Virus record (IMG/VR): IMGVR_UViG_3300020195_000009
Span: 186,001-250,000 of that record
DNA length: 64,000 nt
Direction: 5' to 3' (one strand)
Shown here: in pieces, positions 55,109-56,390 of the stretch
Position numbering within the stretch: position 1 is the first letter of the stretch
Layout of the letters: every line of letters begins with the position of its first letter
Notes under the pieces: generated by a model
Seen by the model: only the letters and a program-made list of their open reading frames with translations
Told to the model about the DNA's origin: nothing
Databases searched by the model: none
Position numbers and translations under genes: made by a program

Positions 55109-55181
55109 CGCTCCCGGCAGGACTTGAACCTGCGACGTACGGATTTAGAAACCGATGTTCTGCCGACTGAACTACGGGAGC
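55109..55181 (-). tRNA. second amber suppressor tRNA (CUA)
   Basis: Canonical spacing gives tcggt-tt-CTA-aa-tccgt (3 G-C pairs, U-U at both ends); D and T arms canonical. Confidence 0.75.
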
Positions 55182-55187
55182 ACACAT

Positions 55188-55502
55188 TCACGCTAGCGCT
55201 AAAGGTAAATTCTTACACAACCGTTTAGCCGCAGGTTCCAAGGCGATTGCAGTTGTCTCATTGTCCCGATCTGGCTCTTTGAAGACCGAAACTTTCAAGC
55301 CTTGATCCCCGGCCCTTTCAACGAGGCGGAGAAGAGCCGCCTCGTTGGGGACCGCTAGGATCGCAAGATGATTCGAGGTCTCATACCAATGGAGGTCTGT
55401 TTCACTGTGCTGGGCGGAAAACTCCCGCCTGGCGTGGGCTGCTTGAACGGCTTGTTGCCCTGCGGGAAGGTCCGACCTCACAACGAGATAGAGCTTTTCC
55501 AC
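55188..55502 (-). CDS. Pth2-like peptidyl-tRNA hydrolase
   Basis: KLYLVVRSDL..GQQAVQAAHA...F.EPD...TTAIAL.P...LPL. Confidence 0.85.
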   Translation of the reverse strand: MEKLYLVVRSDLPAGQQAVQAAHARREFSAQHSETDLHWYETSNHLAILAVPNEAALLRLVERAGDQGLKVSVFKEPDRDNETTAIALEPAAKRLCKNLPLALA

Positions 55503-56038
55503 CGAAAGCCCCACAGCTCCAAGTTCGCCTTCACTCGCTGGAGAAGCGAAGGGCGCTGACTAGGCTTGGAAGGCTCCTGAACTTCAACCACCTCTTCGAT
55601 GGGAACCTTCGGAGCCGGCCCCCCATCGAGCCAGGACTTGATGGCGGTCTCGGGGAAGTGAACCATCAGGTCCTTGCTGAGGACGTTCCCCAGGGCTCTG
55701 TAGAGAGCCCCAGAGTACATCTTGTTCCAAGGGTGGCACTTGGCCTCGATGGTCTTGTACGGCCTCCCTCGGAGCAACCCAAGGAGCAGGAAGTAGACCC
55801 TGGCGTTCGAGCCCACCCCTCGCTTGTCGACCCAGAGGGCAGCCCTCTGGGTTCCAGTCTCAGGCCGCTTGAAGGCAATCCAAGCCTTCTTGCCCGTCAC
55901 CTTTCGGCCGGACACATCCTTCTGGACCGGAGGCCGACCCTCCTTCCACTTGAGAGTTTGAATCTCCAGGCGGAGCTTCTTGCTCTCCTCGATGCGGTCT
56001 TTGATGAGCTGCTTGATCGTCTGCTTTGCGTTTCTCAT
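55478..56038 (-). CDS. hypothetical protein preceding Pth2
   Basis: SD GGAG; R.Y.LL.GLLRGRPY..IE motif. Confidence 0.8.
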   Translation of the reverse strand: MRNAKQTIKQLIKDRIEESKKLRLEIQTLKWKEGRPPVQKDVSGRKVTGKKAWIAFKRPETGTQRAALWVDKRGVGSNARVYFLLLGLLRGRPYKTIEAKCHPWNKMYSGALYRALGNVLSKDLMVHFPETAIKSWLDGGPAPKVPIEEVVEVQEPSKPSQRPSLLQRVKANLELWGFRWKSSISL

Positions 56039-56151
56039 GACATTCTCCAGTTCTTTCGTTCGGGTTTGACCAGGCACGAAGGAACGGGAGGTGGGCCACG
56101 CGGACCGCGTAGCTAGAAAAACGGAGGCTGTACCTACCAGTAGCGGGACAT
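56035..56151 (-). promoter_or_regulatory. leaderless regulatory uORF with two in-frame UAG codons and an RGPP motif
   Basis: MSRYW*VQPPFF*LRGPRGPPPVPSCLVKPERKNWRMS*; TGA overlaps next ATG; promoter TTGACC-N17-TACTCT ends 7 nt before the ATG. Confidence 0.75.
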
Positions 56152-56183
56152 GGAAGTGAGAGTAACCCTCGGAGGGGCTGAGG

Positions 56184-56390
56184 TCAACAGCCGTGGAAGC
56201 TCTCTCGGACCCCCTGCTGGATGACCCGGATCGTGAGGGTATCCCAGCGGAACGCCTTAGCGTCCTGAACCAGGTTACCCATGGCTTCGTCCTCGGTCAT
56301 GCCCCCAAGAGTGCCGAGGAAGTTCTCGATAGCGACCGTTCGGACCCCGTCCTGGTTCGCCAGCTCATGAATGCGGTTGAAGGTCAGCAT
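56184..56390 (-). CDS. hypothetical protein
   Basis: MLTFNRIHELA..., coupled to upstream stop. Confidence 0.7.
   Translation of the reverse strand: MLTFNRIHELANQDGVRTVAIENFLGTLGGMTEDEAMGNLVQDAKAFRWDTLTIRVIQQGVRESFHGC

Follow-up and report, generated by a model that had tools for sequence, protein, structure and literature searches.

Among RAPP-like sequences, RAPP and RGPP cause the most robust ribosome arrest, which is resistant to EF-P and places relatively little demand on the N-terminal sequence (Fujiwara et al., EMBO J 2025, PMC12992588). RGPP is the most avoided tetrapeptide in many bacterial phyla, and RAPP-like motifs are found in small upstream open reading frames (uORFs) before diverse genes (PMC12992588). 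In ApdA, ApdP, the Streptomyces RAPP/RGPP uORFs, and SecM-secA, the functional part of a same-strand uORF ends in R-A/G-P-P, and the stall site adjoins a stem-loop that hides the Shine-Dalgarno (SD) sequence of the next gene (PMC12992588, PMC10951233, PMC7897499). A leader with this same layout is present in the genome of an uncultured huge phage and its relatives. In contrast to the known members of this class, which are secreted or membrane proteins of 50-300 aa that the export machinery releases from arrest, the phage leader is a cytosolic, probably leaderless peptide of 13-35 residues in which access to the motif appears to be gated by stop codons. The downstream genes also differ (i.e., a protein of unknown function, a protein related to peptidyl-tRNA hydrolase 2 [Pth2], and a suppressor tRNA). 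The leader has no signal peptide or membrane segment, and the 9-31 residues that precede the arrest motif across loci (17 in the window) leave no room for a localisation signal. Lacking such a signal, the element would work like an arrest leader and not as a substrate that monitors Sec or YidC. The best reading of the locus is a suppression-gated arrest-peptide translational switch; this reading is likely (a probability of roughly 0.7), and no experimental evidence supports it.

The window is a stretch of 64 kb read from IMGVR_UViG_3300020195_000009, a 286-kb contig in IMG/VR, and has a GC content of 57.6%. It carries 45 tRNA genes at positions 973-17829, plus two distinct tRNAs with a CUA anticodon, all identified by ARAGORN on the minus strand. 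The whole leader and operon arrangement likewise lies on the minus strand, to which all coordinates below refer. The first gene after the leader, gp186, served to find relatives: five close homologues share 63-81% identity with it, and profile searches returned 36, then 283, representatives. Related loci were sampled with their genomic context at 14-15 sites in about 12 lineages, all of them from uncultured huge phages with contigs of up to 407 kb; across these loci gp186 is 29-81% identical to the window copy. No relative was found among 185,579 species genomes in GTDB or among 50,697 GenBank phage records. Scans of IMG/VR with the leader pattern matched the source contig alone, and a scan of metagenome proteins gave at least one new locus. 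Distant paralogues that have only the core domain of gp186 (L023 and L024) lack the leader.

The leader opens with an ATG at 56149-56151, as read from the sequence. A -35-like hexamer, TTGACC (56182-56187), overlaps the TGA stop of an upstream 68-aa ORF and is followed, after a 17-nt spacer, by a -10-like hexamer, TACTCT (56159-56164), 7 nt 5' of the leader ATG. The same architecture recurs in the relatives: TTGAC[N] is present in 15 of 15 related loci, 16-17 nt 5' of a TAnnnT hexamer, and the gap from this hexamer to the leader start is 6-13 nt in all of them (exactly 7 nt in nine). An SD does not precede the leader start in any locus examined. This absence, together with a promoter set tight against the start codon, suggests that the leader mRNA is leaderless or nearly so. 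The window -10 hexamer is weak, matching TATAAT at only three of six positions, which is why a promoter scan did not list the window promoter.

From its start codon, the leader frame of the window reads MSRYW-TAG-VQPPFF-TAG-LRGPRGPP and continues P V P S C ... R M S TGA. The first in-frame TAG (codon 6, 56134-56136) is invariant in the close set of relatives (alignment A2), and coding periodicity carries on across the second (codon 13, 56113-56115). The proposed arrest motif, R-G-P-P, is encoded by CGT GGC CCA CCT (codons 18-21, 56089-56100) and is in frame in all loci. A further 17 codons lead from RGPP to a TGA (56037-35) that overlaps the gp186 ATG (56038-36). The motif R[GA]PP occurs 13 times in the six frames of the 64-kb window, and the other 12 occurrences are never in the frame of a predicted gene. 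Given this rarity and the recurrence of the whole arrangement in 15 related loci, chance is not the explanation.

Every related locus sampled that carries the downstream Pth2 module has one or two in-frame stops 5' of R-G/A-P-P and in the same frame, the motif being RGPP in 14 loci and RAPP in one (L020). Close-set leaders all read MSRYW-stop-V[QH]PPFF-stop-[LV]..RGPP. Two stops are also found in L013 (MKHFF-stop-LHPPFT-stop-LRLARGPP), L022 (MLHFW-stop-GNPPFT-stop-LRRIRGPP), and L014, where two TAGs are followed by LREARGPP. Single-stop leaders have a TAG and then RGPP in L016, L017 (MNGH-stop-LPYVRGPP), and L019 (MTH-stop-VHLVTRSSRGPP), a TAG and then RAPP in L020, and a TAA and then RGPP in L018. 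The exchange of RGPP for RAPP in L020 is consistent with a function as an arrest core. Distant leaders have diverged too far for nucleotide alignment but share this plan, and no leader swaps all of its stops for sense codons, although adjoining codons vary freely at third positions. A preliminary description of the window, made without database searches, had set out the promoter, the frame with its two TAGs and RGPP, the TGA/ATG overlap, a hairpin, and the downstream genes; this anatomy held exactly, on the minus strand. The test proposed there, in-frame conservation of stops and RGPP in homologues, has now been run and is passed in 15 loci from about 12 lineages. The accompanying claim that both UAGs must be read through applies to the window and is not universal, as six lineages have one stop only.

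That the frame is constrained on both sides of the stops is shown by the pattern of substitution among close relatives. Alignment A2 has 20 ungapped columns for each codon position from the ATG to the end of RGPP, of which one, one, and ten are variable at codon positions 1, 2, and 3, respectively. By our own binomial arithmetic, finding at least 10 of the 12 variable columns at position 3 has p ~5e-4. Changes within the RGPP codons are synonymous and confined to third positions, and indels between the last stop and RGPP in the close set measure +3, +3, -3, and 0 nt. After RGPP the frame is lost: variable columns number 5, 4, and 7 at the three positions, and single-base indels appear. Where the frame ends is equally inconstant: in five lineages its TGA overlaps the main ATG, others reach a TAA or TGA early, and in L006 the frame stays open. 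Nucleotide identity in the close set is 84-92% for the leader versus 70-75% for the gp186 gene. The pattern is as expected if ribosomes decode the stops and need the peptide through R-G-P-P and no further; readthrough itself is inferred.

The motif adjoins a hairpin that encloses the SD of gp186. In the window, its 5' arm (the anti-SD, CUCCCGUUCCUUCGU, 56076-56090) begins at the second base of the last Pro codon, and its 3' arm (ACGAAAGAACUGGAG, 56045-56059) contains the gp186 SD, GGAG (56048-56045), which is paired and sits 6 nt 5' of the gp186 ATG. The arms form 13 pairs interrupted by two 1x1 mismatches, and the helix is present in the minimum free energy fold of the region (-40.7 kcal/mol for 131 nt, z = -2.3). 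Counted from the first base of the P-site Pro codon, the partners of the window SD are at +4 to +7. Each of 14 loci was folded separately from the P-site Pro codon to the main start; in 12 of the 14, the SD pairs with bases between +1 and +10, and in all loci the anti-SD hairpin begins at or just past the Pro-Pro codons. The arms differ in sequence among lineages while their complementarity is kept, and z-scores for the individual folds (mononucleotide shuffling) range from -1.0 to -5.9. The SD is weakly paired in L019. The start called in L015 is probably wrong, an ATG at 3019 being preceded by a GGAGG that is the paired element. The leading edge of a ribosome lies about 12-15 nt downstream of its P site, as footprint and toeprint data show. 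By that measure, a ribosome stalled at the motif would cover SD partners at +1 to +10. The two Pro codons (CCN CCU CC) also resemble an anti-SD, and this segment therefore does double duty in coding and in structure.

RNAalifold gave no usable result across divergent lineages because MAFFT cannot align the arms, and the per-sequence folds were relied on instead; within the close set it detected little covariation because there is little sequence change. Additional pairing is possible in the close set, between the R-G codons and the GUCAUG that surrounds the main start. These pairs never vary and carry no evidential weight. The window has no T-run terminator after the leader hairpin, and tRNAs were the sole matches in an Rfam search of the region.

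The operon behind the leader contains two protein-coding genes and a tRNA in the window. The first, gp186 (55478-56038; 186 aa, function unknown), is supported by its coding score and its homologues, and its ATG overlaps the TGA of the leader frame. Sequence searches of Pfam, PHROGs, NCBIfam, and PDB gave no match for the protein. Its AlphaFold model is helical with a pLDDT of 92 and has no fold match in PDB; one uncharacterised phage protein was matched in BFVD. The second gene (55188-55514) overlaps the end of gp186 and encodes a Pth2-like protein (peptidyl-tRNA hydrolase 2 fold; PF01981, E = 8e-12). Its Pfam score of 45.9 bits is above the cut-off of 23 bits, whereas its score against the NCBIfam equivalog is far below the cut-off (30 versus 126 bits), which marks a divergent family member; there is a weak match to human Bit1 (1q7s). 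All loci with enough downstream sequence contain a Pth2-like gene (L004 and L006 are truncated). One to three extra unknown genes sometimes stand between gp186 and the Pth2-like gene (L013, L015, and L017-L020), for which no family match was found save a CapR domain and a sub-threshold DUF7639 match in L020.

The last gene of the operon is a suppressor tRNA-CUA (type a, 55106-55182), called by ARAGORN, scoring 64 bits in Rfam, and with orthologues in related loci. It is followed by a terminator-like hairpin with a T-rich tail (55084-55098), and the same sequence lies 3' of the tRNA in L008. A second, different tRNA-CUA (type b, 53885-53962), also matched by Rfam, is 1.1 kb further on. Types a and b form two orthologous families across loci, and one or two suppressor tRNAs are found downstream in 12 lineages. 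No aminoacyl-tRNA synthetase was found in the module, and no release-factor domain is present downstream.

The identity of the leader stop follows the anticodon of the suppressor. Eleven lineages combine a TAG leader with tRNA-CUA, and L018, the only lineage with a TAA leader, carries tRNA-UUA instead (Rfam, 52.7 bits). An amber suppressor cannot read UAA, so the TAA/UUA match of L018 is what a sensor of suppression predicts. The match rests on this one ochre case, which alone would be a coincidence of about 1 in 12 by our own rough estimate. Some of the suppressor tRNAs (L018, L015) have long variable arms, and the inserted amino acid therefore probably differs among lineages. We infer that such variation fits a stop that serves as a gate better than one that specifies a particular residue.

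These features suggest the following mechanism for the switch. Transcription from a sigma-70-like promoter would begin at the leader start codon or no more than a few bases from it, and the ribosome would meet a UAG within the first few codons. Where RF1 wins, a tiny peptide would be released and the hairpin would stay shut, with the gp186 SD hidden. Where a phage suppressor tRNA decodes the UAG (both UAGs in the window), the ribosome would reach R-G-P-P and arrest with peptidyl-tRNA(Pro) in the P site and Pro-tRNA in the A site. The arrested ribosome would cover the 5' arm of the hairpin, which starts inside the A-site codon, and thereby free GGAG for initiation at gp186. Translation of the Pth2-like gene by coupling after gp186 is proposed because its ORF overlaps the gp186 end. 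As the suppressor tRNA gene closes the same operon, the circuit would read out its own tRNA. With two stops, output may scale approximately with suppression efficiency squared. Ribosome arrest, exposure of the SD, and coupling are all inferred; the model assumes that RGPP arrests ribosomes on a chain of 13-35 residues made from a leaderless mRNA, for which there are no arrest data. The preliminary description had already proposed a readthrough-gated stall that opens the hairpin. Conservation, periodicity, and geometry now support that proposal, while the mechanism remains an inference; its suggestion of possible feedback from the suppressor tRNA of the operon is backed by the TAA leader and UUA anticodon of L018.

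Several points count against this reading. There is no obvious means of releasing the leader arrest, the SD of L019 is weakly paired, the start in L015 had to be re-called, and the window -10 hexamer is weak. Neither gp186 nor the divergent Pth2-like protein has a known function, which leaves the purpose of the switch unexplained, and any physiological role is inferred. A bolder reading, offered only as a possibility, is that the module is a self-reinforcing genetic-code switch whose leader measures the ratio of suppression to termination. The products gp186 and Pth2-like protein would then tip the balance further against RF1, or would clear peptidyl-tRNAs and stalled ribosomes born of genome-wide readthrough, and the infected cell would pass abruptly from the standard code to stop-as-sense at a set point in infection.

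Recoding of TAG throughout the window is a separate question. TAG terminates 10 of the 49 confidently predicted genes, and stop usage is ordinary. In-frame TAGs flanked by coding signal are not overrepresented in the 64-kb window: a test of flanking coding scores gave two TAG candidates versus one TAA and two TGA controls. The distance to a backup stop is not discriminating (median 19 codons after TAG-ending genes versus 37 after TGA-ending genes, n = 10). Genes around the module are intact under the standard code in all related loci. A suppressor tRNA that would match a reassigned stop is present, in the form of the two tRNA-CUA genes. Window-wide TAG recoding as an explanation of the leader was rejected on the flank scores and stop usage. 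Recoding of TAG in late genes, in the other 222 kb of the genome, is possible, and regional recoding of this kind has been described in phages (Borges et al., bioRxiv 10.1101/2021.08.26.457843). It would be compatible with the sensor model and would give the sensor a purpose.

The rival that survives best, though we consider it improbable, is that TAG is a plain sense codon throughout infection. The leader would then be an ordinary RGPP leader whose TAGs have no regulatory meaning, and it would answer some other signal (e.g., the supply of Pro-tRNA, the turnover of peptidyl-tRNA by Pth2, or the gp186 product). In its favour are the two suppressor tRNAs of the phage, the good documentation of recoded phages (bioRxiv 10.1101/2021.08.26.457843), and the evidence from the arrest motif and the hairpin, which fits equally well. 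Against it stand the lack of in-frame TAGs with coding signal in 64 kb, the use of TAG to end 10 of 49 genes, and the neighbouring genes of related loci that remain intact under the standard code. In addition, at least one stop is always kept 5' of the motif despite free third-position variation nearby, and the stop type in L018 tracks the tRNA anticodon.

A second rival, which we consider somewhat less likely still, gives the arrest a different logic or target. Arrest or ribosome queuing might lower expression through mRNA cleavage or blocked entry, or would act on transcription or Rho polarity, with negative or positive feedback on the level of tRNA-CUA instead of control of gp186 translation. 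The tRNA-CUA is indeed the last gene of the same unit, with a terminator-like hairpin after it, and RGPP arrest is very stable (PMC12992588). However, what is conserved is that the SD pairs with bases a stalled ribosome would cover, a classic layout for activation, and the leader hairpin has no T-run terminator.

A third rival holds that the region is an RNA-only regulatory structure (e.g., a 5' UTR that binds a protein or ligand) and that the small ORF is untranslated. The 131-nt region does fold somewhat better than shuffled sequences (z = -2.3), and it is more conserved than the neighbouring genes. This explanation is nonetheless highly doubtful, given the third-position periodicity up to RGPP, the indels in multiples of three, the persistence of stop-then-R[GA]PP where nucleotides cannot be aligned, and the absence of an Rfam match. 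Passage of the stops by programmed frameshifting or hopping instead of a suppressor tRNA can be all but ruled out: the second stop of the window is preceded by the potentially slippery U UUU UUC, but the zero frame stays constrained past each stop, non-slippery codons (e.g., ACG, CAC, CAT, TTG) precede the stop in other lineages, and suppressor tRNAs with the matching anticodon are in the same operon.

The suppression-gated switch can be set beside other systems in which a leader or a stop codon reports on translation. In amino-acid attenuators such as trp and his, the leader controls terminator and antiterminator hairpins with a U-run, whereas the phage leader has no T-run and its hairpin holds an SD. 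The prfB gene, for RF2, is reported to use an early in-frame stop to gauge termination efficiency and set its own expression (Craigen and Caskey 1986); it does so by a +1 frameshift and makes a release factor, whereas the phage leader keeps the zero frame and no release-factor domain is found downstream. [quoted passage not shown] The present module differs in having no synthetase or release factor and no recoded genes in the window, and a cis-acting suppression sensor has not been described for the code change modules. In eukaryotic AMD1, as proposed for the phage leader, ribosomes that read through a stop meet an arrest sequence, there a C-tail arrest peptide (PMC13025110). AMD1 relies on near-cognate readthrough and limits its own gene, without SD unmasking and without a dedicated suppressor tRNA.

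No natural element of this kind in phages was found in the full-text literature searched. If the best reading is true, the leader would be the first example in nature of a cis-acting sensor for nonsense suppression, a switch whose input is the state of the cell's genetic code. It would also broaden the range of RAPP/RGPP arrest peptides, adding viral members, cytosolic peptides that are very short and probably leaderless, and a new signal to be sensed. The leader gives a concrete, testable way into the question of how phages that carry suppressor tRNAs time a change of code or make it stable, and both gp186, with its confidently predicted novel fold, and the divergent Pth2 are proteins worth study. 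A counterpart of the phage leader has been built synthetically, an amber-gated tna leader made by introducing a TAG (Liu, Qi, Yanofsky and Arkin 2011, as described in PMC6412442). That synthetic device is engineered and works through Rho-dependent transcription termination, whereas the phage leader is natural and combines an arrest motif with an SD-hiding hairpin. For genetic-code-expansion work, the phage leader would be a compact, ready part that parallels the device engineered in 2011.

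The suppressor tRNAs that accompany the module (the leader, the gp186 gene, the Pth2-like gene and the tRNA itself) fall into two orthologous families, types a and b, which are represented in the window and in the related huge-phage loci L002, L007, L008, L014, L016, and L022. Type a lies directly 3' of Pth2 (window 55106-55182) and is characterized by a GCUCCCG or GCCCCCG acceptor strand and G73; type b lies farther downstream (window 53885-53962) and carries a GGUCCUG acceptor strand and A73. Long variable arms are found in the suppressor tRNAs of two further loci, L018 (UUA anticodon) and L015 (CUA anticodon). 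Because of these arms, the inserted amino acid probably varies among lineages, an inference from sequence alone. Two overlapping tRNA-CUA genes were predicted in L015 by ARAGORN (4346-4433 and 4411-4502); Rfam lends support to the latter alone. The UvrD-type helicase of the same locus (4560-6552) is split by a Hint/intein domain.

The window also has a block of 45 tRNA genes on the minus strand (973-17829), with small open reading frames in between. These genes serve all amino acids except Trp, and no CCA anticodon was found among them.

ADP-ribosylglycohydrolase, amidohydrolase, and receiver-domain protein genes recur near the module in many related loci. In the window, these adjoin a macro-like phosphatase gene (phrog_335), and the set occupies positions 52728-53654 (+), 53999-55075 (+), 56831-57265 (-), and 57907-58464 (+). 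An AcrVA2-like gene adjoins the module in L014 (5545-6585). The R[GA]PP leader is absent from L023 and L024, which encode small proteins distantly paralogous to the gp186 core domain; in L024, a tRNA-CUA gene lies a short way upstream of the paralogue on the opposite strand.

Within the window leader, RNA folding predicts an 8-bp hairpin (GCUACGCG / CGCGUGGC; 56113-56094, minus strand) whose first base is the G of the second TAG; it is built from the RGP-RG codons and is limited to close relatives, whose leaders align with that of the window. In the leaders of the window and L013-L022, the residue preceding the in-frame stops is mostly aromatic (YW, FF, FW), and the remaining stops are preceded by Thr, His, or Leu (FT, GH, TH, YL). 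The codon following the last stop encodes Leu, Val, or Ile, and a P-F-x-stop motif is common to the two-stop leaders. This residue pattern is unexplained; it may tune termination versus suppression or, alternatively, could form part of the arrest peptide.
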